In this document: positions 12,855-57,114 of the stretch, piece after piece | Layout of the letters: every line of letters starts with the position of its first letter | How positions within the stretch are numbered: the first letter of the stretch is position 1 | DNA from: Macrostomum hystrix | Lineage: Eukaryota > Animalia > Platyhelminthes | DNA length: 64,000 nt | Reading direction: 5' to 3' | NCBI GenBank assembly: GCA_950097015.1 | Contig: CATNEN010000025.1 | Coordinates: 7,440,001 to 7,504,000, forward strand | Notes under the pieces: generated by a model | Seen by the model: the letters and a program-made list of their open reading frames with translations, nothing else | The model's database searches: none | Told to the model about the DNA's origin: nothing | Position numbers and translations under genes: made by a program

Positions 12855-13594
12855 TTTACTTTATTTGCAGGCTTGAAGCTTGACCCTAATCGTACGACAA
12901 GCACAGAATTATCGTTTCCTCTCCGCGGAATCGAGCCCAAGACGTGACCCGCTATTAAATTTGGCTAGTATTAGAGATTATAAAGCATAGAACTGGCGCA
13001 CTGTAAATCATAGCATCGAGGGCCCGGTTTTAAGACGAAAAAGATCCTCACTCGATAGAATAATCTGATAACAAAGACTACTTCCGCAATAACAAACACG
13101 TCAGTAATTCAGACGACTCAAAACATATTTCAACAGGCATTTTCCCGCTAGCAATATTAGCTGATTAAAAAAAGACTGAGAATAATTACATTTTCGCATT
13201 TTATTCCTGCAATATATCGTTTCGAAGAGAAACGCAGGGGTCCGTTTGTCACACTTGCAATTTTTCTATCTAATTAGATATTTTTTTGATAAAAAACTGA
13301 CAGAAAAAATACACCGACGTCACTTTCAAACTGCGGGTACTCCAAGCAGCGTTTCCCCTTTCTCTCACTCTCTCAGTCCTATAGACTTGTTGATTCCACT
13401 TCTGCCCTCTTGAAAAATTCTCCCAGAAGCATCAAATCAGCTACCGGAGCGGGCCGCCATTGGTCAGAGGGTATGGGCTTGGGGGTAGGTAGGCGTTACA
13501 AAACAGCATTCCGCTTTATATTTATTACTGCTGCCAGACGTCTGCTTTGTAAACTATATCTGCTTTGGATTCTCTTACTGACAATCGCGCAGAC

Positions 13595-14830
13595 ATGGAA
13601 CCCGACGGCTCCGGTCCGTACAGGACCTGGCTGGCCCGCCTCAACCTGCTGAACGCGCCGCTGCTAGCTCTGGGCATTGCTGGCAATTTTGTGAATTGTT
13701 TGGCATTCTCGCAGAGAGCCGTATGGCGTCACAGCCTGACTGCGGCGCTGTTCGCCCTGTCCCTGAACGACCTGCTGCTGCTGTGCGCCTACACCGCCGT
13801 GTCCTACTCGAGCCTGCAGATCGGCAGTGCGGTCGGCTGCTTCGCCAGCCAGTTCGTCTATGGCAGCCTGTCGCTGCTCAGCCCCTGGCTTCTAGTCGGC
13901 ATCACCGTAGACCGGCTGGTCCATGTCGCCGACTTCTCGTCACTAGCCAGGCGACTTCGGCCGGGCTTTGTGGCTGCCGCGTTGGCCGCGCTCAGCGCCA
14001 GTCTGAACCTCCACGTGGCCTACAGCATCGTGTACCAGCCGGACCCCATTCACAATGGCACCATGAACTGCATGCCTCGGCCCGGCGCGGAGGGCTTCGC
14101 TCTGGCCGACACGGTGGCCACCGCCCTTCTACCCGGCGCACTCCTGGTGCTACTGAACTCGGCCGTCTACCACGTCGCTAGACGGGCCGGCCGGCTGCGT
14201 CCACGGCCGGAGGGCGAAGCCGGTGTCGAACAGCCGCCAGGCAGGCGTTACCCGCTCAGCCGGATGCTCCTGAGCTTCTGCCTGGCATACCTGCTGCTCA
14301 ACCTGCCCAACTACGGAGTCATCTGCGCCGGCCTGCTGCTGCAGCGGAGCAGCGTTAGCATCAATGGTGAGCACTTCAACCTGGTGCGTAGCGCCTGCCA
14401 AACACTGTACCTGGCTCACTTCTCCACCAATGGCGTCATCTATGCCTACTGCAACCGCAAGTACCGCGTGGCACTTTCATTGCTGGGCCGCAAGGCGCGT
14501 CATCGACTGGGCCGACTGCCGCGCCTTCTCAGGCGCCTTCTGACGCGCCTGCGACCGCGCGCCCGACCCCGATGGCCTCTCGGCGGCCATCAATTTGTCA
14601 CCTTCGTGCCAATCAACCCGACGGCAGCGGCCGGAGCCGACATCGGCGCCACAATCGGACAGTCCAGCAGCATCTGCCGGTGCTGCCGATGTCAACAGCA
14701 GTTGAACTTGCCACATCCAGCCGCAGCTGTCGCAGCTGTCGCCGCCGCGATCGCTGCCGGTCAAGATTCTGGCCCCGAAGGCGACCTCGTTGTCGGTTGC
14801 CAACAGATGAAACCGACAGTATCTAGCTGA
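13595..14830 (+). CDS. Class A (rhodopsin-like) GPCR, probably peptide-receptor type, intronless, ~411 aa
   Basis: Seven hydrophobic segments; GN in TM1, LSLND in TM2, TVDRL in TM3, CLAYLLLNLP in TM6, TNGVIY in TM7. First ATG at 13595 (CGCAG|ACATGG); the ORF track start is a TTG. Confidence 0.88.
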   Translation: MEPDGSGPYRTWLARLNLLNAPLLALGIAGNFVNCLAFSQRAVWRHSLTAALFALSLNDLLLLCAYTAVSYSSLQIGSAVGCFASQFVYGSLSLLSPWLLVGITVDRLVHVADFSSLARRLRPGFVAAALAALSASLNLHVAYSIVYQPDPIHNGTMNCMPRPGAEGFALADTVATALLPGALLVLLNSAVYHVARRAGRLRPRPEGEAGVEQPPGRRYPLSRMLLSFCLAYLLLNLPNYGVICAGLLLQRSSVSINGEHFNLVRSACQTLYLAHFSTNGVIYAYCNRKYRVALSLLGRKARHRLGRLPRLLRRLLTRLRPRARPRWPLGGHQFVTFVPINPTAAAGADIGATIGQSSSICRCCRCQQQLNLPHPAAAVAAVAAAIAAGQDSGPEGDLVVGCQQMKPTVSS

Positions 14831-31600: not shown

Positions 31601-34600
31601 TTTGAATGGATAAACTTGCATGGACTTAAGTTGGACTAATGGAAAGCAGGTGAACAGAGTGACGACAGAATGGGTAGAGGGGGAGAGAGGGAGAGGGGAG
31701 AAGAGGGATAAAGGGGAGAAGACAGAGATGGAAGAGGAAGTGAGAAGGGAAGAGAGGGGAGAAGATGGAGAGGAGAACGGAAGGAGAGAATGTTTTGGAG
31801 AGTAGAAAAGAGGAAAGGAAGTAAATTGGATGTGATTTGAAAGCGAGACAAGTGTTCCTAAATAGTATGCAGTTAAATTTAGATAATTCCTGAAATATCA
31901 AACTCCAAAAAACGAAGCTTAAAAATCGTTCAGTAAAACGATCAGCAATTAAAAATTTTTGAGGGAAATAGAAAATTGCGTAGATTTTTTTAACTGAAAA
32001 CTAACGTGGCAAGTGCAGCATGGACTAGGGGGGGTGCTGGAAAAAAGAAACAAAATAGACAGCTAAACAAGATTAGGAATAAAGTATAAGCAGAACACGA
32101 TGAGATAGCGAGAGAGAATGAGAATAGAAGCGGAGTCCAGGCTGGCGGAAGGCACAAAATAATTCTATTTTTGGGTTGCAAAAGCAGCGCAACCCAGACT
32201 AGACTTGTACAGCCGGATCTGATGGCGATGAGAACAGACACTCGGACTGACTTCTGTCGGCTCTGCTGAACGACAATGGCGGGCCTGGGGCTGGACTAGG
32301 CCCTTGTATTCCACAGACGCAGACACCGCCCACGCATTTGAAGGAAGAAGCTCAGGAAAGGAAAAACCGAATCAAAGAGAAAGTAGCCTACCAAGTAAAA
32401 ATATCCCAAACCGGGATCTGAACTCACTGGAAGTCCCCGAGGTGGCCGCCGAGCTGCTGCTCAATCTGCGGCGCGGCTGTCCAGACGTTGATGCGCTGCG
32501 AGATCGCGACGACAACGACAAAGGCGGAGGAGGCGGCGATGCCTGCCTTCCTGTCTGGAGCGTCGGGTGCGGCAGCTGGCGCGGACAGCCGGACGCCGAC
32601 TCCTCCGGGCAACTGCTGCCACCAGGCTGTGGCACCGCCAGCGGCCCTCCGGCTCGAGCGGCGCCGTCCGACGCCCGACGAGGCAGCAGCGGCTGAGCCG
32701 TCGGAGCTGACAGCAGCTGCAGCGCCGGCTGGGTCGACCGTCGCGACGTAGCCGCGACCCGATCGTCGCGGAACAAAACGTCTTCCTCGGCTTGGTCCAT
32801 CGGCGAATCCTCGACGAAAACGTCGCAGTCGCCGTCGGCGTCGCCAACGCACAGGAGGTGCTCGGCGATGCTGTAGGCGCCGGATAGTTGGTCGCAACGA
32901 CCGGAGCGAACGGCTTCGTCGACACGGTCGGTCGCATAGCCCAGGCCTGACAGGCGGCCCAGCACTCGAGGCGACACCTCAGACAACATCGGCGACAGAC
33001 AAGTCGACACCGACGATTCCTCCTCGTGGCTAGCGATGAGGTCCAGGAAGCGTCCACTGTGCGGACTTTCCAGCATCCAGGGCTCGGCGCAGGCCTCGCG
33101 CAGGCTGAATCGCTTGTCGGCGGCTGGGTGGAGCAGGCCCCGGAGGAGGCTCTCGCAGCCATGACTCAGGTAGAACGGATAGCGGACCAGGCCGCGAAGT
33201 ACGCTGGCCCGGATGCTGGCCAGATGGTCGCCGCAGAATGGGAACGCGCCGCAGACTAACACGTAAAGAATAACTCCAAGACTCTGCGGGCAGTGGAGGT
33301 TAGGATTGGGGTCAAGTCGCCACGTCGTCCCGAAGGGATCAAGTAGAGATGGGATCAAGTCGAGATGGGATCAAGTCGAGATGGGATCAAGTTGAGATGG
33401 GATCAAGTTGAGATATAAGCAAGTCGAGATGGGATCAAGTTGAGATGGGATCAAGTTGAGATATAAGCAAGTCGAGATGGGATCAAGTTGAGATATAATC
33501 AAGTCGAGATGGGATCAAGTCGAGATGGCATCAAGTCGAGATGGGATCAAGTTGAGATGGGATCCAGTTGAGATGGGATCAAGTTGAGATGGGATCAAGT
33601 TGAGATGGGATCAAGTTGAGATGGGATCAAGTTGAGATGGGATCAAGTTGAGATGGGATCAAGTTGAGATGGGATCAAGTTGAGATGGGATCAATTTGAG
33701 ATGGGATCAAGTTGAGATAGGATCAAGTTGAGATGGGATCAAGTTGAGATGGGATCAAGTTGAGATGGGATCAAGTTGAGATGGGATCTGTCACAAAAAC
33801 TCCAAAGCTCACCCAGACGTCGACTTTGGTGCCGTCGTACATTTCGCCCCTAAACAGCTCCGGGCTGGCGTACTGAGGCGATCCGCAGTGGGTGCTGAGT
33901 AACCGGTCAGTCGGCATGAAGTTGCAGAAGCCGAAGTCGACCAGCTTGAGTCGACCATGCGAGTCTAACAAAAGATTCTCAGCCTTCAAATCTCTGTGGG
34001 CGATGCCGCGGCTGTGACAGTAGGAGACCGCGCAGACCGCCTGCCAGAACAACTCACGAGCCTCCGATTCTGCCAGCTGCTTCTCCTTAGAGATGTAGTC
34101 TGGAAATTCAAATGATTAGCTAGGAGATTAGCTAGGAGATTAGCTAGGAGATTAGCTAGGAGATTAGCTAGGAGATTAGCTAGGAGATTAGCTAGGAGAT
34201 TAGATAAGAGATTAGCTAGGAGATTAGATAACATATTAGCTAGGAGATTAGATAATAGATTAGCTAGGAGATTAGATAAGAGATTAGCTAGGAGATTAGC
34301 TAAGAGATTAGCTAGGAGATTAGCTAGGAGATTAGCTAGGAGATTAGATAAGAGATTAGCTAGGAGATTAGATAACATATTAGCTAGGAGATTAGATAAT
34401 AGATTAGCTAGGAGATTAGATAAGAGATTGGCTAGGAGATTAGCTAGGAGATTAGCTAGGAGATTAGCTAGGAGATTAGCTAGGAGATTAGCTAGGAGAT
34501 TAGATAAGAGATTAGCTAGGAGATTAGATAACATATTAGCTAGGAGATTAGATAATAGATTAGCTAGGAGATTAGATAAGAGATTGGCTAGGAGATTAGC

Positions 34601-37600
34601 TAGGAGATTAGCTAGGAGATTAGCTATGAGATTAGATAAGATATTGGCTAGGAGATTAGATAAGAGAAGATTAGCTAGGAGGTTAGATAAGAGATTAGCT
34701 AGGAGATTAGATAAGAGATTGGCTAGGAGATTAGCTAGGAGATTAGCTATGAGATTAGATAAGAGATTAGCTAGGAGATTAGATAAGAGATTAGCTAGGA
34801 GATTAGATAAGAGATTGGCTAGGAGATTAGCTTGGAGATTAGCTATGAGATTAGATAAGATATTGGCAAGGAGATTAGATAAGAGATTAGCTAGGAGATT
34901 AGATAAGAGATTAGCTAGGAGATTAGATAAGAGATTGGCTAGGAGATTAGCTAGGAGATTAGCTATGAGATTAGATAAGAGATTAGCTAGGAGATTAGAT
35001 AAGAGATTAGCTAGGAGATTAGATAAGAGATTGGCTAGGAGATTAGCTAGGAGATTAGCTATGAGATTAGATAAGAGATTAGCTAGGAGATTAGATAAGA
35101 GATTAGCTATGAGATTAGATAATATATTAGCTAGGAGATTAGATAAGAGATTAGCTATGAGATTGGATAAGAGATTAGCTAGGAGATTAGATAAGAGATT
35201 AGCTAGGAGATTAGATAAGAGATTAGCTATGAGATTAGATAAGAGATTGGCTAGGAGATTAGCTAGGAGATTAGCTATGAGATTAGATAATAGATTAGCT
35301 AGGAGATTAGATAAGAGATTGGCTAGGAGATTAGCTAGGAGATTAGCTATGAGATTAGATAAGAGATTAGCTAGGAGATTAGCTAGGAGATTAGCTATGA
35401 GATTAGATAAGAGATTAGCTAGGAGATTAGATAAGAGATTAGCTATGAGATTAGATAAGAGATTAGCTATGAGATTAGATAAGAGATTAGCTAGGAGATT
35501 AGATAAGAGATTAGCTAGGAGATTAGCTAGGAGTTTAGCTAGGAGATTAGATAATAGATTAGCTAGGAGATTAGATAAGAGATTAGCTAGGAGATTAGCT
35601 AGGAGATTAGCTATGAGATTAGATAAGATATTGGCTAGGAGATTAGACAAGAGAAGATTAGCTAGGAGGTTAGATAAGAGATAAGCTAGGAGATTAGATA
35701 AGAGATTGGCTAGGAGATTAGCTAGGAGATTAGCTAGGAGATTAGCTAGGAGATTAGCTAGGAGATTAGCTAGGAGATTAGATAAGAGATTAGCTAGGAG
35801 ATTAGATAACATATTAGCTAGGAGGTTAGATAAGAGATTAGCTAGGAGATTAGATAAGAGATTGGCTAGGAGATTAGCTAGGAGATTAGCTATGAGATTA
35901 GATAAGAGATTAGCTAGGAGATTAGATAACATATTAGCTAGGAGGTTAGATAAGAGATTAGCTAGGAGATTAGATAAGAGATTGGCTAGGAGATTAGCTA
36001 GGAGATTAGCTATGAGATTAGATAAGAGATTAGCTAGGAGATTAGATAAGAGATTAGCTAGGAGATTAGATAAGAGATTGGCTAGGAGATTAGCTTGGAG
36101 ATTAGCTATGAGATTAGATAAGATATTGGCAAGGAGATTAGATAAGAGATTAGCTAGGAGATTAGATAAGAGATTAGCTAGGAGATTAGATAAGAGATTA
36201 GCTAGGAGATTAGCTAGGAGATTAGCTATGAGATTAGATAAGAGATTAGCTAGGAGATTAGATAAGAGATTAGCTATGAGATTAGATAAGAGATTAGCTA
36301 GGAGATTAGATAAGAGATTAGCTATGAGATTAGATAAGAGATTAGCTAGGAGATTAGATAAGAGATTAGCTAGGAGATTAGATAAGAGATTAGCTATGAG
36401 ATTAGATAAGAGATTGGCTAGGAGATTAGCTAGGAGATAAGCTATGAGATTAGATAAGAGATTAGCTAGGAGATTAGATAAGAGATTAGCTAGGAGATTA
36501 GCTAGGAGATTAGCTATGAGATTAGATAAGAGATTAGCTAGGAGATTAGATAAGAGATTAGCTAGGAGATTAGATAAGAGATTAGCTAGGAGATTAGATA
36601 AGAGATTAGCTAGGAGATTAGATAAGAGATTAGCTAGGAGATTAGATAAGAGATTAGCTATGAGATTAGATAAGAGATTGGCTAGGAGATTAGCTATGAG
36701 ATTAGCTATGAGATTAGATAAGAGATTAGCTAGGAGATTAGATAAGAGATTGGCTAGGAGATTAGATAAGAGATTAGCTAGGAGATTAGATAAGATATTA
36801 GCTAGGAGATTAGATAAGAGATTGGCTAGGAGATTAGCTAGGAGATTAGCTATGAGATTAGATAAGAGATTGGCTAGGAGATTAGATAGGAGTTTAGCTA
36901 GGAGATTAGATAAGAGATTAGCTAGGAGATTAGATAAGAGATTGGCTAGGAGATTAGATAAGAGATTAGCTAGGAGATTAGATAAGAGATTAGCTAGGAG
37001 ATTAGATAAGAGATTGGCTAGGAGATTAGCTAGGAGATTAGCTATGAGATTAGATAAGAGATTGGCTAGGAGATTAGATAAGAGATTAGCTAGGAGATTA
37101 GATAAGAGATTAGCTATGAGATTGGATAAGAGATTAGCTAGGAGATTAGATAAGAGATTAGCTAGGAGATTAGATAAGAGATTGCTATGAGATTAGATAA
37201 GAGATTGGCTAGGAGATTAGCTAGGAGATTAGCTATGAGATTAGATAATAGATTAGCTAGGAGATTAGATAAGAGATTGGCTAGGAGATTAGCTAGGAGA
37301 TTAGCTATGAGATTAGATAAGAGATTAGCTAGGAGATTAGCTAGGAGATTAGCTATGAGATTAGATAAGAGATTAGCTAGGAGATTAGATAAGAGATTAG
37401 CTATGAGATTAGATAAGAGATTAGCTATGAGATTAGATAAGAGATTAGCTAGGAGATTAGATAAGAGATTAGCTAGGAGATTAGCTAGGAGTTTAGCTAG
37501 GAGATTAGATAATAGATTAGCTAGGAGATTAGATAAGAGATTAGCTAGGAGATTAGCTAGGAGATTAGCTATGAGATTAGATAAGATATTGGCTAGGAGA

Positions 37601-40600
37601 TTAGATAAGAGAAGATTAGCTAGGAGGTTAGATAAGAGATAAGCTAGGAGATTAGATAAGAGATTGGCTAGGAGATTAGCTAGGAGATTAGCTAGGAGAT
37701 TAGCTAGGAGATTAGCTAGGAGATTAGCTAGGAGATTAGATAAGAGATTAGCTAGGAGATTAGATAACATATTAGCTAGGAGGTTAGATAAGAGATTAGC
37801 TAGGAGATTAGATAAGAGATTGGCTAGGAGATTAGCTAGGAGATTAGCTATGAGATTAGATAAGAGATTAGCTAGGAGATTAGATAACATATTAGCTAGG
37901 AGGTTAGATAAGAGATTAGCTAGGAGATTAGATAAGAGATTGGCTAGGAGATTAGCTAGGAGATTAGCTATGAGATTAGATAAGAGATTAGCTAGGAGAT
38001 TAGATAAGAGATTAGCTAGGAGATTAGATAAGAGATTGGCTAGGAGATTAGCTTGGAGATTAGCTATGAGATTAGATAAGATATTGGCAAGGAGATTAGA
38101 TAAGAGATTAGCTAGGAGATTAGATAAGAGATTAGCTAGGAGATTAGATAAGAGATTAGCTAGGAGATTAGCTAGGAGATTAGCTATGAGATTAGATAAG
38201 AGATTAGCTAGGAGATTAGATAAGAGATTAGCTATGAGATTAGATAAGAGATTAGCTAGGAGATTAGATAAGAGATTAGCTATGAGATTAGATAAGAGAT
38301 TAGCTAGGAGATTAGATAAGAGATTAGCTAGGAGATTAGATAAGAGATTAGCTATGAGATTAGATAAGAGATTGGCTAGGAGATTAGCTAGGAGATAAGC
38401 TATGAGATTAGATAAGAGATTAGCTAGGAGATTAGATAAGAGATTAGCTAGGAGATTAGCTAGGAGATTAGCTATGAGATTAGATAAGAGATTAGCTAGG
38501 AGATTAGATAAGAGATTAGCTAGGAGATTAGATAAGAGATTAGCTAGGAGATTAGATAAGAGATTAGCTAGGAGATTAGATAAGAGATTAGCTAGGAGAT
38601 TAGATAAGAGATTAGCTATGAGATTAGATAAGAGATTGGCTAGGAGATTAGCTATGAGATTAGCTATGAGATTAGATAAGAGATTAGCTAGGAGATTAGA
38701 TAAGAGATTGGCTAGGAGATTAGATAAGAGATTAGCTAGGAGATTAGATAAGAGATTAGCTAGGAGATTAGATAAGAGATTGGCTAGGAGATTAGCTAGG
38801 AGATTAGCTATGAGATTAGATAAGAGATTGGCTAGGAGATTAGATAGGAGTTTAGCTAGGAGATTAGATAAGAGATTAGCTAGGAGATTAGATAAGAGAT
38901 TGGCTAGGAGATTAGATAAGAGATTAGCTAGGAGATTAGATAAGAGATTAGCTAGGAGATTAGATAAGAGATTGGCTAGGAGATTAGCTAGGAGATTAGC
39001 TATGAGATTAGATAAGAGATTGGCTAGGAGATTAGATAAGAGATTAGCTAGGAGATTAGATAAGAGATTAGCTATGAGATTAGATAAGAGATTGGCTAGG
39101 AGATTAGATAAGAGATTAGCTATGAGATTAAGTAGAATATTGGATAGTATAATAAGTAGGAGGACTAGCTGGGAGACATGCTACGTAGGCAGAGGATCTG
39201 GGTGATTAGCTAGAAATTGTAGGATGGGTCAAATTAACTAATAGATGTGAAGAACCGGATCAACGAGTATGAAGTAGCCAAAAAAAATTGACCCTTGATG
39301 GAACTGTGGTACCAATAAAGTACAAAAGAGGGCATTTTGAAATTAAATAAATGTTAAACGCAGAAAAAAAACAGAACGATAATTGATAATTGATTTCAAA
39401 ATTTAATCGCAAATATTAGCACTGAGAAAAAAACCATCTGAAAAAGTCTCTGGCGGGATTGTGAATGCCTGCAAAAAATTGACAATTCCTTTAAAAATGT
39501 CGAATATTATGCCCCGCTAAAAATAGGCAAGAAACAAACAAAAATAATTTTTTCAATCAATCTACGCAAAATGATTTAAAAATACGCTAGTAGTTGCCAC
39601 AGAAAGTGCTCGCGCCTTTGCTTTGAATGGAAGCGGAGGACTCTCGATTCTAAATTTAAAGCAGACTTTGCCGCCAGACAGTTCAGAGGACGCAGTGGGT
39701 TACCGCTTCATTGCCAGAATCGAGCAAGAAGAGATTCAACAAAAGCAAAAAATGGTCTAGAATCGTACAATGAATCGTATCAGGAATCGCATCAGAAACA
39801 GTTGCAGGAATCGTATCTAGAATCGCATCAGGAATCGTACCAAGAATCGTATCAAGAATCGTATCAGGAATCTTACCAGGAATCGTATCAGGAATCGTAC
39901 GAGTATCAACAATCGTATCAGGAATCATATCAAGAATCGTACCAAGAACCGTATCAGAAAAAGTTGCAAGAATCGTATCAGGAATCGCATCAGGAATCGT
40001 ACCAAGAATCGTACCAAGAATCGTATCAAGAATCGTATCAGGAATCTTACCAGGAATCGTATCAAGAAAATCGTATCAGGAATCATATCAAGAATCGTAC
40101 CAAGAATCGTATCAGGAACAGTTGCAAGAATCGTATCAGGAATCGCATCATGAATCGTACCAAGAATCGTACCAAGAATCGTATCAAGAATCGTATCAGG
40201 AAACTAACCAGGAATCTTATCAAGAAAATCGCACCAGGAATCGTACCAAGAATCGTATCAAGAATCGTATAAGGAATCGTATCGAGAATCGTACCAAGAA
40301 TAGTATCAGAAATAGTTTCAAGAATCGTATCAGGAATCGCATCAGGAATCGTACCAAGAATCGTACCAAGAATCGTATCAAGAATCGTATCAGGAATCTA
40401 ACCAGGAATCGTATCAGGAATCGTATCAAGAATCGTATCAGGGATCATATCAAGAATCGTACCAAGAATCGTATCAGAAACAGTGGCAAAAATCGTATCA
40501 GGAATCGTAGCAAGAGCAAAGATTTAAAAAAAAATTATCAGGAATCGCAGCCAGAATCGCCTGAGAGAATATTTTTGTACTTCAATAATAATCGCTTTTT

Positions 40601-45343: not shown

Positions 45344-46321
45344 TCAGTCAGTACTAAATCGTCGCCTCGGCTGGCAGGTGAAGAGGCCAACCAGCGATCG
45401 CCGGAAGGTGGTGTTGAAGGCCAGGAAGATGGCCAGGTTACAGAATACGCCGAGGCAGGCCCAAGCGGAAGCGGCATAGTAGAGACACAAACCCAAGTAG
45501 AAGAGGCTTCCAGTACTGCTACTAGCACTAAGAGACGCATCCAACAGGCCCAGCTGCATGGCGGCCAGAACTGCCGCGTAGGGAGCATTGAAGACGGCGC
45601 TGGCCAGTGCAGCCAGCAGCAGGGCTCGCGTCAGCTGACCGCGGCGCCTGCCGCCTAGTAGTCTATAGATGCAGTACACACTGAGTACTAGGTTAAGCGC
45701 CACAGGGAGCACGTAGGTTAGTGCCAAGGTTTCGAAAATTGCGTAATAAAGAAAGGCCTGGCGCCGTTCGATGGCGCAGAGCATGTTGGCCTGGTCGGTG
45801 TCGCCGTTCGGTGGGCCGACAAAGACTAGGCGCGGCGAGGCGGCTACAGCCAAGGCGCAGAACTCGGCTCCGCTTAGCAGGAAGCCGCCGCGTAGGCGAC
45901 TGAGGCTGCCACGCCGCTGCCGGCTGAACGGTCGACAGACGGCGGCGCAGAGCTCGGCAGACATAGTCACCACGGTCCAGCTGGATACGGATTTGCACAG
46001 GAAGTAGCCATAGTACAGAACTTTGCAGAGTGCCGCGCTACTATCCGAAGGCAGGCCACCAGACCTAATAAGCTGGGTGATGGCGGCCAGGCAGATGCTG
46101 TGCAAGGAATCGCTAATTGCCATGACAACCAGGTACCAGTGACAGGAGTAGCGCATACCCCGATGCAGTAGAGTCAGGACAACCAATAGGTTGGCCAGGC
46201 AGCTAAGCACACCTGTTGCCAGGTAGAGTCGAAATTGGTGCGGTCGCCAGTCTCGCTGGGTCTCGTAGCACAGTGGACAGTCGGCTGGTTCTACGGGGCA
46301 GCTCTGATTGGCTGCCACCAA
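45344..46321 (-). CDS. Class A GPCR (orphan, peptide-receptor-like); 7TM region uninterrupted, true start not identified
   Basis: LANLLVV (TM1), MAISDS (TM2), extracellular Cys, MSAELCAAVCRPF (TM3), FNAP (TM6), CNLAIF (TM7). No in-frame ATG before TM1; the ORF track start is TTG. Confidence 0.8.
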   Translation of the reverse strand: MVAANQSCPVEPADCPLCYETQRDWRPHQFRLYLATGVLSCLANLLVVLTLLHRGMRYSCHWYLVVMAISDSLHSICLAAITQLIRSGGLPSDSSAALCKVLYYGYFLCKSVSSWTVVTMSAELCAAVCRPFSRQRRGSLSRLRGGFLLSGAEFCALAVAASPRLVFVGPPNGDTDQANMLCAIERRQAFLYYAIFETLALTYVLPVALNLVLSVYCIYRLLGGRRRGQLTRALLLAALASAVFNAPYAAVLAAMQLGLLDASLSASSSTGSLFYLGLCLYYAASAWACLGVFCNLAIFLAFNTTFRRSLVGLFTCQPRRRFSTD

Positions 46322-49962: not shown

Positions 49963-51345
49963 ATGAAACGGCTATTTAACTACTTTATGAAAGATTCGGT
50001 TAGAAGTACCGAAGACGAAAGCTTCGTAGAAAAGGCATCAGAAATTCAAGAGGACTACCCATCTGTGCTAACGCCAGTTTTAGAAGCCATTGAAGCCATC
50101 GACACTGAAGCTGAAGACATGACAGTAGCTCGCAAGCTGAACGACAGCGATGACCATTCACCTGGTCTTTCGCAGATGACAACAGAAATTGCGAGTAACG
50201 AGCTGCAGGAGCAGCAGCAGCAGCAGCAGCAGCAATACCAGCAGCCGCAGCAGCTACTTGCAGCATCGTCACTTTCGTTGCAGCAACAACAGCGGCAGCC
50301 AGAAACTGTTAATTCCAAGGAGTCATACGCTGATGTCAGCAATGCCACTTCAGCCGCGGTCGCAGTCATCGCTTCACCATCAGAGGAGTCACTAAGTCCA
50401 TTTGGCAACGGAGATGAGACCAATGCTGGAAGCGCGGCCGTCAGTAATGAGGACCTAAAAACAACAGCAACCGCCAGCACTGGCAGCGCATGTGGCAGCA
50501 TCTCTAGCAGTGGTGGCCTAGTTGGGGGCAGCAGCGGAAGTGGCAACGGCAGTGTCATCAGTAACGGCGTTGTGGGCGAAAGCACTAGCACAAACTCAAA
50601 CAGCTGGGAGCCAAAGGTGAAGGACACAAATATTGCGGAGAAGGGCGACTCTTTAAGGATCACAATGAAAGATACTGGCGATATGCCGTCAGGAAAGCTT
50701 GGCAAGCCTGAAGTGATACATCCTCTCCAGAATTCGTGAGTTTGGCACTAAATTTGATCCCGATGAACTTTTTATAGATTTTTGTGTAAAAAACAACAAG
50801 CCAACAAACAAACTCCTTCCAGCTGGGGCATCTGGTGCTTCATGCAGAACCGCAGCCAGGACTGGCACGAGAACGTCCGGCACATCAGCAACTTCTCCTC
50901 GGTTGAGGACTTCTGGTCGCTGTTTAATCACATCCAGACAGTGGATAATCTACCAATTGGTTGCGACTACTACATCTTCAAGGCCAACATTCAGCCCATG
51001 TGGGAGGACAAAGCCAACGTGAATGGCGGCCGCTGGCTGCTGAAGGTGCCTCAGTCGCAGGTAAACTTTGTGCAGCTGTGGATCGAGACCCTCCTGCTGC
51101 TGGTTGGCGAGGCATTCGACACCGAGTCGGACTCCATCTGCGGCGCCGTCGCCCAGGTTCGACGCGGCTTCAACAAGATCAGCATTTGGACTAAGGAGGC
51201 TGCCAACCGCAAAGCATGCATGCGCATCGGCTACAGGTGGAAGGCCTGTATAAAGACGTCAGCTCCTATTCACTACGAAGCGCACCTGGAGGTTAATAAT
51301 AGAAAGGGCGGACGACGAAGCAACAGTGTGTATTCTATCAACTAA
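49963..51345 (+). CDS. EIF4E: Class I eIF4E cap-binding protein with long low-complexity N-terminal extension, 431 aa, 2 exons (49963-50735, 50823-51345)
   Basis: HPLQNS|W across intron TC|GTGAGT..TTCCAG|C; WGIW, QDW, EDFW, PMWED, GGRW, KISIW motifs. Confidence 0.92.
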
Positions 51346-52338: not shown

Positions 52339-53699
52339 TCGTATATTCATACTGGTGTTGAAAATCCAATGCTCCAAACTGACTACTTTTGCTGCCAGTA
52401 GGCGGGCTAAACTGTGTCAAACTTGCCAACAAAAAAATAAGAAATGCTTCTGTTGACTACACGTTCAATCGAAACAATCAGTTATTTATAGTTCTCGTTT
52501 AAACAAAATTTAATGACGTATAAAGCTGACGTATAAAGAAGATGGTAAATTGTAGTAATTATTGTCCATCGCTTCGTCTATGAGCGAACCATATTTCAGT
52601 AATTAAATCAGTTTATTGAGCAATAGTGGTAGCAGCATGTCAGCTCGTACATAATATCAGGTTTATTATTGCATTTTCGAGCGAGATAACTTTTGCTGTA
52701 GTTGATGCAGATTTTCTCCTATAATTTTCTGCGTCCATCAGTCCAATAGTCCATTGTCATTTCATTCAAAACAACGTTACTTCTTTAACAATGTTTTTTT
52801 CTCTTAAAAAAGACACACTCGGCAGTGGTCTTCCTCTACTCCGAAAGTAATTTAATTGAGCTGGCTGGCCGAGATGGGAGACAGAGAGAAAAGAGGTGTG
52901 TCATGGCAACCAAACGGCCAGCTATTTATGGGCCGAAAGCCATCATCGCTGAGCAGGTTGAGAACTCTATCTATATCTGTCGCTATACTCAAACTACTCC
53001 TCTTTGGAGTACTAGTGAGCATGAGAAGTGCCGTTTTTGTGTCTGCACTTGCTTGTCTATATATTCTGTGCACCCCGACTTCTCTATTTTACGTGGCTAT
53101 GCTCAAACGCTGCTCATATTTTGTCAAAGAAATGAGAAATCCACGCTGCCCTTAGCATTCATTATTCCTATTATCGTGTCAAACGCCACCTCTTTCGCCG
53201 GACATCCACCCCACACGCAGCCGCTCCTGTTCTTCATCTGCTGGTTGATAGACGAAATCGGAGAGTGTTATTTGAGCTGAGCTGAGCAAGCAGGCCGTGG
53301 TCTAGAATGAGCTTGGATGCAAAATGAGTTGATTCCTAAGCGTCGCTAGTATTTTTTTTCTTGCCTCGCTGCATCGTCCTGAGACCAACCACAAAAGCAG
53401 AGAGTTGGAGCGAGAGAACGCGAGAGGTGGTGGGTGGCTGGTGAATCCGCGGCGGAGCTGGGGTGGCTGCCGTCAGTGGCAATGAAGAATGTACGCCTGC
53501 TCAGGCCGGGACGGAGGGAGGTGAGAAGGCGACAGAGTGAAGTGGAAGCGGTGACTGTGGGGGGGGGAGCGATAGCCATTCAACCAGAAACGAGGGCCGC
53601 ATAAATAAGAAATAGGAAGGCTGGCTGGCGGACATTAGTTAAATCACTGCAGCTCATTTTAATTCGAAAATCTTCTTTAAAAAAAGATTGACAAGAAAG

Positions 53700-54866
53700 A
53701 TGAGCAAGAAACCTGTGCGAATCCCGCCAGGCTTCAAGGAGCTGCTGCAGGAGTTTACAGTCTCCGTGCTGCGAGAGGCACCGGATGACGTCGTTGATTT
53801 CGCCATCGAATATTTCACCCGGATGCGCCTGAGCCGGATGCATCACTCGGAGGCTGGCGGCGATGACGACGCTGGCAGCCGCGGCGGCGGCGGCTCCGAT
53901 GCCGAGTCAGACTTCGACGAGCCAATGCCGCCGCCGATGCAGAATCGCGGACCTCGACGCGTCGCCGTGGCTGGCGAGAGCTTCGATCCGGAGAAAGAAG
54001 ACGATGACGAGACTCCGATCACCATTCATCCCAAGACGGAGGACCAGCGGCGGCGCCTCAACGAGGCCGTCAAGCACATCCTGCTGTTCCGCTGTCTGGA
54101 CGAAGACCAGATGCATGACGTCATCAACGCCATGTTCGAGCGGCGCTGCGAACCGGGCGACCGCATCATCACCCAAGGCGAGGACGGGGACAATTTCTAT
54201 GTGATCGAATCCGGCCTCTACGACATCTACGTCCTGATCAACGGCCAGGACACCAAGGTCGGCCAGTACGACAACAAGGGCTCGTTTGGCGAGCTGGCGC
54301 TGATGTACAATGCGCCCAGAGCCGCCACCATCACGTGCGCCTCGCCAGGCAGCATCTGGGCCATGGACCGGGACACTTTCCGCCGCCTGGTGCTGAAGAA
54401 GGCCTTCCAGAAGCGCGTCATGTACGAGAACCTCATCGACTCCGTGCCGCTGCTGAAGGAGCTGGCGCCGTACGAGCGCATGAGCATCGCCGACGCGCTC
54501 AAATCCAAGATCTATGCCGACGGCGATAGGATCATTGCCCAGGGTGAGCCGGGCAACGAGATGTACTTTGTCGAGGAGGGCGAGGTACGCATCACCCGAC
54601 GCTCCGCCGACGGCGAGGAGGTTGAGATCTCCCGGCTGCACAAGGGCGGTTACTTTGGCGAGCTGGCCTTGCTGACGAAACAGCCTCGGGCCGCCAACGT
54701 CTACGCCTGCGGCGGCCGCTGCAAGGTGGCCGTCCTGGACGTCGGCTCGTTTGAGCGTCTACTCGGCCCCTGCCTGGACATCATGCGGCGATCTATCGAC
54801 ACCTACCAGCAGCAGCTCACCAGCCTGTTTGGCAGCTTGGAAGCCGTGCCGGATCTGCGCGGCTGA
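53700..54866 (+). CDS. PRKAR2: cAMP-dependent protein kinase type II regulatory subunit, intronless, 388 aa
   Basis: RIIa dimerisation/docking domain [32 protein letters not shown]; hinge [13 protein letters not shown]; two cNMP domains with [15 protein letters not shown] and [16 protein letters not shown]. Confidence 0.95.
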
Positions 54867-57114
54867 ACGCTGGGCAACTTCTCCGGATAACTGAAATATT
54901 GCATGCCTACTATACTCTTGTTTTGACTTCTAAGTAAGTTAAGATGCTTCTAGGCGCAAATCAAACAGCAATTAGTAGTTCATCAGCCGGAGGGAAAATT
55001 AGTCTTTCTCAGAAATAGGAAATGAAATTGGGAAGAGAAGTGCCCACTCGCTCGCCTAACTAACACTGATTGCCTCTCGGAACTAAGAAAATAATGTTTC
55101 TACAAAGTCCTTCGCCTCACGCAGCAATCCCCGTCCTGTTCCTCTCCCATTTTGAGCGTGATTTAGCGTCATCATCGTTGCTATTATTTTTTTCTTCATT
55201 TTCTACTATGCTGCAAGAAAGTTTAAATTCGTGTGTTAGACTTTTAAGGTGTACAGAAAATCTTGCTCCATTTTCCTCTCCCACCTTTTTTTCTGTATTT
55301 TATTTACCAGCTCCTCAAAAATGCGCTGAATTTTCATTGCAAAATGAAACAAGTTATAGATATGTTATAGATATCGGGAAGAAGTGACAATAATTTAAAT
55401 ATGTAGTAGTAGTAGTGCAAGTATAACAAATTGTAGTAAGAGAATAAACCTCCATTTCTCTCGATCCACATGTTGTGTGCATGCTTAATTTCTTTTGTAC
55501 TTTAATTATAGCTATAGCTTATCTATGGCAAAAATATTTGATTTGTTTTAGTATACTTACAAATGAAAGTAAAAGTACATATCCTTCTATATTAATTGAT
55601 GTTTAAATATACTCTGACCCATCCAGTCGAAGCTTCGGATTTAATTTTGACAGATCAATCCGGAAATTTTCGGTAATTGAGTCTGTTAATTATATATGAA
55701 TTGAAATTTATAATTCAGATCTAGTTTCAATTATTACTGTTCAGATTTTGTATTCTGTGTAAAAACAATTTCTCAATTATATTTTTGATATAAATACAAT
55801 AAAATACAATAAAACTTCTCGGCACTTTGTTATAATGTTACTGTAAATACAAGACGAATTGGTGGAAACACCGAAAAACTGATTAGACATTATAAACATT
55901 TAGAACAAAAATTCTTAATTAGAACAGAGAGTTTAAAGTAGCTCTTCTCTTGACAAGCCTTTTTTGTTTTTCGTTGACGTCAGAAGCCAGCACTGCCTCG
56001 CCTCTCTACTGAGCAGCACCTTGAGCAGAAACGAAGTTAGAGAGAATTTTTTTCATAAAATGCCGCGGGTTCATTAATTTAGCTTCAGTCTGCTAAGCGA
56101 ATCGTGAGACTATATGAAAAAGCAAAAATGGTCATTTATTGCCTGAACGAGGTGCATGTGTGTGTTCTTATCTTTTTGACAGTGTCAAAGCAGACAAACC
56201 AGCCGTTGCCACTCAGGGTTTGTTTGTTCCTTATCTAATATTCTGCTAATACTGTCTCTTCAAGCTACATGTTTCTTAATCTTGCTGCTTCTATACGCAG
56301 AATGTTCGGGGAGCCTCACTATTATTACAAGAATTCTAGAAGCGCTGCTGAAGGATATGTATATGAAGCAGGGTGATTTATAACACATTTTCTGATTTAA
56401 CAGCTTCGTGTTTTCCTCTCACATTTCTGCTTTCTGTCATTTATTTCTTTCTTCTCATGATCTGTCGCTATCATAGCGATATGTGGACGTAAAGTCCGCG
56501 ATTTTATTTATATAATCGAATTGATGGTTGCAAAAGTCGAAACATTTTTTAAAACCAGCCTTTAAATTGTGATTCTATATAAGATTTGGGAGTAACTAAG
56601 TTAAGATTATCTAAAAATAGCAGCAAAAAGACCCAACCTGGACCACTCTAATAATAGCACCGTCAATTCTTGACTTGCTATTTTCTGTTTAGAATTGTTC
56701 AGCTCATCTCTGGGCGGGTTGGCAGTTGCACAACTACAAATCTAATTAATCGCTGGTTCCGTCGCTTATTATGTAAAGAGGAAGAGAAAGGACCTTCTCC
56801 TAGTAAACCCTTTTACCAATTTATTATTATCTTGGTTCGCTAATCTGTTTCTGTCCATGAGGCCACGAGTTATCCTCGTACTTACGGCCTATCTCGCAGG
56901 CCCAATTTCTTCTTTAGGCATTTCTTCTTCCCAAGTCCTCCGCTAATTTAATGTAGCTCGTAGTTTTTAGCACTGCCTAGAAAAGAGAGACTGCGTGCCA
57001 CTTTGAATTTGTCAGTTTTGGGGCTTTGGTCTGAGGTCTTTGAGATTTTTAGCGACCTTCTATCTGTGCGAAGGCGGGGATGCTTCTCAAAAACTAGGAT
57101 GCATGAATTGGTGT

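Follow-up and report, generated by a model that had tools for sequence, protein, structure and literature searches.

The Gene for an RII-Type Regulatory Subunit and Its Surroundings

The window, that is, the whole stretch of 64,000 nucleotides of Macrostomum hystrix DNA that was analysed, contains on its forward strand a gene for a PKA regulatory subunit of the RII type. The open reading frame starts with ATG at 53700, runs uninterrupted to the stop codon TGA at 54864–54866, and encodes 388 amino acids (hereafter, the window protein). The gene and its parts, each with the evidence on which it was placed, are as follows:

53700–54866 (+): RII-type PKA regulatory subunit, complete single-exon coding sequence of 388 codons plus TGA (ORF list, Pfam, phmmer against PDB, dN/dS)
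53715–53825 (+): D/D domain of the RII type, residues 6–42 (Pfam PF02197 and alignment to RIIalpha)
53955–53969 (+): inhibitor site RRVAV, residues R86, R87, V88, A89 and V90, with the codon GCC of the P-site Ala89 at 53964–53966 (sequence, structure alignment, contigs and hinge alignment)
53955–53996 (+): extended inhibitor segment, residues 86–99, with four clade-diagnostic positions, 89, 91, 94 and 99 (column-by-column comparison of 33 Ala/Gly rows with 85 Ser rows; hinge alignment)
54285–54329 (+): phosphate-binding cassette of cAMP-binding domain A, residues 196–210, Glu and Arg intact (alignment to RIIalpha and RIIbeta)
54654–54698 (+): phosphate-binding cassette of cAMP-binding domain B, residues 319–333, Glu and Arg intact (best Pfam stretch at residues 272–355; alignment)

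In the Pfam search, the RIIa domain (PF02197) was found at residues 11–42 with an E-value of 2.8e-10 and a score of 40 bits against a cut-off of 22, and cNMP_binding (PF00027) was found in two stretches with 145 bits. The inhibitor site is encoded by CGA CGC GTC GCC GTG at 53955–53969, in the frame of the ATG at 53700; the sequence-only reading, in which the codon at 53964–53966 had been called GCC and hence Ala, is borne out by the sequence. In the catalytic cleft, the inhibitor site is docked by Arg-Arg and the P+1 Val. Both the Arg-Arg (P-3 and P-2) and the P+1 Val are present in the window protein, while its P-site is without a phospho-acceptor.

A gene for eIF4E (Pfam IF4E, E 7e-51) is located at 50782–51345 (+), 2.4 kb upstream of the RII gene. 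In addition, two long, single ORFs with 7TM receptor domains of the rhodopsin family were found at 45344–46321 (−) and 13565–14830 (+), and at 9306–10196 (+) there is an ORF that carries an RNase H domain and probably belongs to a retroelement. Positions 34114 to 39130 are taken up by satellite DNA, an array of about 5 kb built on a 24/48-base unit, in which the 24-base unit recurs about 209 times with 90% matches. On either side lie further arrays, whose units are 16 and 12 bases long (33335–33788 and 39760–40509). It is because of the satellite array that an extreme skew of G over C of 0.45–0.7 and spurious long ORFs appear between 34 and 40 kb.

Reality of the Alanine Codon

The stretch is contained in 14 public runs, which come from five studies. 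Four of them, covering three studies and three organism labels, were compared with the window over 53600–55000 in the form of Logan contigs, not raw reads; these contigs drop rare variants, the RNA and DNA labels of the runs are uncertain, and X1 may be the sample from which the window was assembled, and hence possibly non-independent. The contigs are:

X1, record 1, 53600–54263: 0 differences to the window
X5, record 13, 53647–54263: 0 differences to the window
X9, record 22, 53902–54250: 2 differences, none in the hinge
X10, record 9, 53676–54497: 8 differences, none in the hinge

No alternative letter at 53964–53966 is listed in the contigs of these four runs, which show GCC and not TCC, the codon that had been named beforehand as speaking against an alanine here. 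Because contigs stand in for raw reads here, and the assembly may derive from X1, their agreement alone is modest support for GCC, and the comparative evidence is far stronger. In the hinge of the Macrostomum lignano gene, which reads CGC CGA GTA GCC GTG, the Arg, Arg and Val codons are synonymously changed and the Ala codon GCC is kept. The earlier caveat that one T>G substitution, or an error in sequencing, would give this codon is thus excluded by conservation, with GCC in M. lignano and Ala or Gly in 33 related proteins. A true Ser hidden by faulty sequencing or assembly, or by a one-base variant private to one individual, is already refuted as an explanation: TCC and GCC are indeed one base change apart and X1 is possibly the assembly's own sample, but the contigs of four runs and three studies are without an alternative letter, GCC is also found in the syntenic gene of M. 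lignano, which is identical at 87.6% of its nucleotides, and five M. lignano paralogue entries and 27 further flatworm-clade proteins have Ala or Gly.

Assignment of the Window Protein to RII

Textbooks separate the two types of subunit biochemically by the inhibitor site, a substrate in RII and a pseudosubstrate in RI. A survey published in 2025 and based on 1122 PKA-R sequences called RRx[A/G] of RI and RRxS of RII "entirely conserved" in metazoans (PMC12608923). When the window protein was compared with solved structures by phmmer, it scored 407 bits with RIIalpha, 390 with RIIbeta, 238 with RIalpha and 227 with RIbeta, and the RIIalpha match placed its residues 6–379 on RIIalpha 4–393. In the HMMER alignment, RRVAV lines up column for column with RRVSV in RIIalpha and with RRASV in RIIbeta, which agrees with the earlier claim that Ala stands at the site of the autophosphorylated Ser of RIIalpha. 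The isolated RII D/D structures 2izy and 2hwn match the window protein with about 48 bits; among the best 60 of 83 matches (E 1e-10), where these RII D/D structures appear, no isolated RI D/D structure was found. Moreover, Val6 and Ile8 of the window protein are hydrophobic positions aligned with Ile3 and Ile5 of RIIalpha.

The best matches of the window protein from other phyla in the word search are all named type II. In the trees, which were built without RI sequences, the window protein falls within a set of named RII from six phyla, protist-like proteins serving as outgroups, and the neighbours of its Ala/Gly clade are the RII of cnidarians, arthropods, molluscs, annelids and vertebrates. 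In the exhaustive search of cluster representatives, the best 150 were listed, down to 255 bits, RI being expected at about 238 bits. P0184 has an RI-like hinge, yet it is equidistant from RI and RII (270 vs 255 bits), and it therefore served as a distant outgroup only.

The assignment "RII, not RI" is supported by the score gap, by the D/D domain and by the nesting among named RII. The sequence-only reading had described the D/D and cNMP domains as RII-like, and Pfam, the scores and the tree position confirm it; a placement with RI, which would have spoken against it, is contradicted by the scores and by the nesting among RII in trees without RI sequences. It is extremely improbable that the window protein in fact belongs to RI, or is a chimera of RI and RII, and has been wrongly read as RII, in which case its pseudosubstrate would be ordinary. 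RRx[A/G] is the hallmark of RI, and the trees took in no RI sequence; against this stand the full-length scores (407/390 bits for RIIalpha/RIIbeta vs 238/227 for RIalpha/RIbeta), a D/D domain that aligns from RIIalpha residue 4 and matches isolated RII D/D structures, and a clade nested among metazoan RII, with best matches in other phyla all named type II.

The RII hallmark, RRxS with an autophosphorylatable Ser, is absent (RRVAV, Ala89). Among the features of RI, the pseudosubstrate RRx[A/G] is present, and the RI-type D/D and the overall RI sequence are lacking. Judged from its sequence, the window protein is RII by descent and architecture and is not RII by the biochemical definition, by which alone it resembles RI; it is an RII variant and not a canonical RII, because the biochemical hallmark RRxS is absent. 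With mammalian RIIalpha and RIIbeta (PRKAR2A and PRKAR2B) it shares full-length homology, the N-terminal RII D/D, the acidic linker, Arg-Arg at P-3/P-2, Val at P+1 and two intact cAMP cassettes, whereas its P-site is Ala and not Ser, and its P+2, P+5 and P+10 are clade-specific. With Ala at the P-site, RII-style single-turnover autophosphorylation and phosphatase reset are impossible at that site. RIalpha and RIbeta have the same non-phosphorylatable RRx[A/G] site, and the trematode RRAGV resembles the RIbeta-type Gly site; in contrast to them, the window protein has an RII-type D/D, it is far less similar to them than to RII, and scores and trees argue against RI descent.

The M. lignano Counterpart and Purifying Selection

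The exact window protein is absent from the databases, and its best match is a protein of M. lignano with 94% identity. The M. lignano gene likewise consists of one exon, and upstream of it, too, lies eIF4E (L001, 3339–4674). Alignment between the two loci is confined to the coding parts, and the intergenic DNA does not align. The lack of an exact database match and the unaligned intergenic DNA point to a Macrostomum relative, or else to a diverged duplicate region, as the source of the window. Over the coding sequence, the two genes are 87.6% identical, with dS 0.63, dN 0.033 and dN/dS 0.053, which shows that this RII-derived subunit is under strong purifying selection.

The single exon could be taken as the mark of an intronless retrocopy that is decaying and has lost its Ser by drift. 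This explanation is very improbable: the ORF and the two cAMP-binding cassettes are undamaged, comparison with a counterpart that is itself single-exon and shares the eIF4E neighbour gives a dN/dS of 0.053 at dS 0.63, Ala/Gly is common to distant flatworms, and other genes of the window are also long single ORFs. As single-exon genes seem common in the window, an intronless RII gene is not unusual there.

Distribution of Ala/Gly and Remodelling of the Hinge

The P-site column was read in an alignment of the window protein and its 120 best word-search matches, with three long, very divergent proteins left out of the count. One of them is the 670-residue P0029; two of the three carry Ala or Gly, and these proteins, probably non-animal, were used as outgroups. 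In the flatworm clade, Ala or Gly was found at the P-site in 33 of 33 rows (window protein included), while all 85 of the other RII-like rows, from cnidarians, annelids, molluscs, arthropods, a hemichordate and vertebrates, have Ser. The named members of the flatworm clade are distributed as follows:

RRVAV: window protein and five M. lignano entries
RRAAV: trematodes Opisthorchis and Calicophoron
RRAGV: trematodes Fasciolopsis, Paragonimus and Schistosoma
RRQGV: cestodes Taenia, Mesocestoides and Spirometra
Ala or Gly at the P-site: monogeneans Protopolystoma and Cichlidogyrus

The rest of the 33 rows are transcriptome proteins that cluster with named flatworms. Besides the P-site, the clade is marked by P+2, which is always Ala, P+5, which is always Ser, and P+10, which is Lys. 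When the 33 rows were compared with the 85, 11 clade-diagnostic positions were found in all, and four of them (89, 91, 94 and 99) fall within 11 residues of the inhibitor segment. At the level of the alignment, the comparison shows that the whole inhibitor segment was remodelled, and then frozen, in the Ala/Gly clade. The sequence-only reading of an RII with an RI-style site therefore stands in its sequence-level core; the protein is, however, no one-off hybrid or recent point change, since Ala/Gly is the conserved state of a whole flatworm RII clade.

Ser-Bearing Paralogues in Flatworms

More diverged flatworm RII proteins of the Ser type were found by the exhaustive search of cluster representatives and by name look-ups:

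P0272 and P0152 (BOX15_Mlig009670g2), M. lignano: RRPSV
P0175, Schistosoma intercalatum: RRHSV
P0171, Calicophoron daubneyi: RRPSV
P0212, Clonorchis sinensis: RRKSV

Two of these paralogues were checked against solved structures, P0272 scoring 309 bits with RII vs 228 with RI, and P0171 312 vs 208; both are much less similar to vertebrate RII than the window protein is. In addition, the Ala/Gly clade includes a second schistosome paralogue, a very diverged one, which is represented by P0271 (Heterobilharzia americana; also P0251) and whose hinge RRQGVMGVSIDPEK contains RRQGV. It follows that schistosomes possess at least two RII-type subunits that cannot be phosphorylated, besides one of the Ser type.

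Every named flatworm protein among the 120 best matches has Ala or Gly, from which it might be thought that flatworms gave up RII autophosphorylation altogether and that the Ala/Gly lineage is their only RII. There is very little probability left for this, as RRxS proteins of the RII type occur in M. lignano, Schistosoma, Calicophoron and Clonorchis; the loss of all Ser-type RII in flatworms is ruled out at the sequence level by these coexisting paralogues. The alignment of hinges across flatworms and paralogues, which had been proposed as a check, upheld the expectation in 33 of 33 clade rows, with the restriction that the lineage is not the sole RII of flatworms. Moreover, RI is present in all sampled phyla, flatworms included (PMC12608923), so the Ala/Gly RII lineage is not a substitute for a lost RI.

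Trees of RII-Type Subunits

The hinge columns were removed before every tree. In a quick IQ-TREE analysis of 121 rows, the flatworm-type Ala/Gly rows form one group, and the trait needs two changes. A further quick tree, for which representatives were added, has 111 rows, and in it 34 Ala/Gly rows group as a single clade at SH-aLRT 97. The careful tree, of 64 rows, supports the Ala/Gly clade with 96/86 when one odd neighbour row is counted in and with a moderate 87/68 alone, and it joins all flatworm RII-type rows, Ala/Gly and Ser, in one clade with 100/99. The tree suggests that the Ala/Gly and Ser RII of flatworms arose by duplications within the flatworm lineage, which is uncertain because of long branches and several rows without an assigned organism.

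P0029 (670 aa, UPI0005FF18AC) has an RII-type D/D followed by four cyclic-nucleotide-binding domains. Its first pair of these domains is degenerate, with 25% identity to the query, and its second half shares 53% identity with the window protein. In its second hinge, MPRQSV, Ser is kept and the P-3 Arg is lost, that is, a degenerate Ser hinge. In the careful tree it adjoins the Ala/Gly flatworm clade.

Other exceptions at the P-site were also observed. P0190, a EukProt protein attributed to the jellyfish Sanderia malayensis, is RII-like (297 bits with RIIalpha vs 209 with RIalpha) and has the hinge RRQAVAAESYDP with RRQAV; its closest BLAST matches are cnidarian RII, and in trees it stands apart from the flatworm clade. 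Because it is cnidarian-like and lies outside the flatworm clade, an independent change is likely, and the replacement of Ser by Ala probably happened more than once, unless P0190 is contamination. Like the window protein it is of the RII type with an Ala P-site, but it looks like an isolated case and not a phylum-wide lineage. P0234, RII-like and nearest by BLAST to arthropod (tick) RII, reads RRGDV, and the Asp at its P-site may act as an inbuilt phosphomimic. P0166, RIIalpha-like and vertebrate-like, has the hinge RRKLF, perhaps from a model or frame error.

Proposed Mechanism

The main reading, to which a probability of about 0.8 is given from comparison of sequences, is that the gene is a functional member of a flatworm-wide RII-type lineage in which RRxS became RRx[A/G]V before macrostomids and parasitic flatworms diverged, and that this state has been kept by purifying selection. 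A wider reading has slightly better than even odds: the best-conserved RII lineage of flatworms would have been a pseudosubstrate since before the split of macrostomids and neodermatans, diverged paralogues would have kept the phosphorylatable site, and type II PKA would have been split anciently into phosphatase-independent (fast-resetting) and phosphatase-gated forms.

Following mammalian biochemistry, the subunit would dimerise and dock to AKAPs through its RII-type D/D domain, RRVAV would plug the catalytic cleft, and the binding of cAMP would release the catalytic subunit. In the absence of P-site phosphorylation, the slowly reassociating phospho-RII state would never be entered. Because the P-site cannot be phosphorylated, recapture of the kinase after a cAMP pulse is predicted to be fast and to need neither calcineurin nor other phosphatases. 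The phosphatase-gated mode may, by conjecture, be left to the Ser-type paralogues. The earlier proposal of AKAP anchoring with neither autophosphorylation nor calcineurin reset is, by this analogy, a reasonable one.

It has been reported that dephosphorylation of wild-type RII is required for its reassociation with the catalytic subunit (PMC5987717). RIIalpha S98A gave low PKA activity on which calcineurin was without further effect, that is, it was like a permanently dephosphorylated RII (PMC8560092). In RIIbeta S112A, "a pseudosubstrate version of RIIbeta", the kinetics of catalytic-subunit binding were barely changed (PMC4497662). These mutants carry the same one functional change in an otherwise RII protein, and no better model is available for the behaviour of the flatworm subunit. 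They are, however, laboratory point mutants, whereas the flatworm change is natural, is spread across the sampled flatworms, and stands beside other fixed hinge changes and Ser paralogues.

On another account of the mechanism, the subunit acts like RI: a tight holoenzyme would need MgATP trapped over the pseudosubstrate, and cellular ATP would become part of the regulation. Ala or Gly at the P-site leaves space for the gamma-phosphate of ATP, as in RI, and in this clade the entire inhibitor segment, beyond the P-site, is remodelled. However, S112A alone barely altered the binding kinetics of mammalian RIIbeta (PMC4497662); this account is considered unlikely, and fast recapture, as predicted by analogy with the mammalian pseudosubstrate mutants, remains the preferred mechanism.

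Significance for Flatworm PKA

PKA is essential in schistosomes and is a proposed drug target, and in these studies its regulatory subunits were left uncharacterised (PMC2724707, PMC3542114). In the schistosome phosphoproteome, PKA regulatory subunits are phosphorylated, the main text of that study not giving the sites (PMC7089424). A literature search, for which most subscription journals were outside reach, found no description of the flatworm RII hinge, and an earlier notice of it is possible.

The flatworm lineage, the best conserved among the RII of the sampled flatworms, is a conserved exception to the rule "RII = substrate, RI = pseudosubstrate", one that is clean and testable and is not a new kind of system. 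The role of RII autophosphorylation has so far been addressed only through point mutants, and the flatworms offer a natural experiment on its purpose, that is, on termination kinetics, calcineurin cross-talk and calcium effects. The finding bears on schistosomes, liver flukes and tapeworms: if it is true, the type II holoenzyme of parasitic flatworms would differ from that of the host at the active-site interface.
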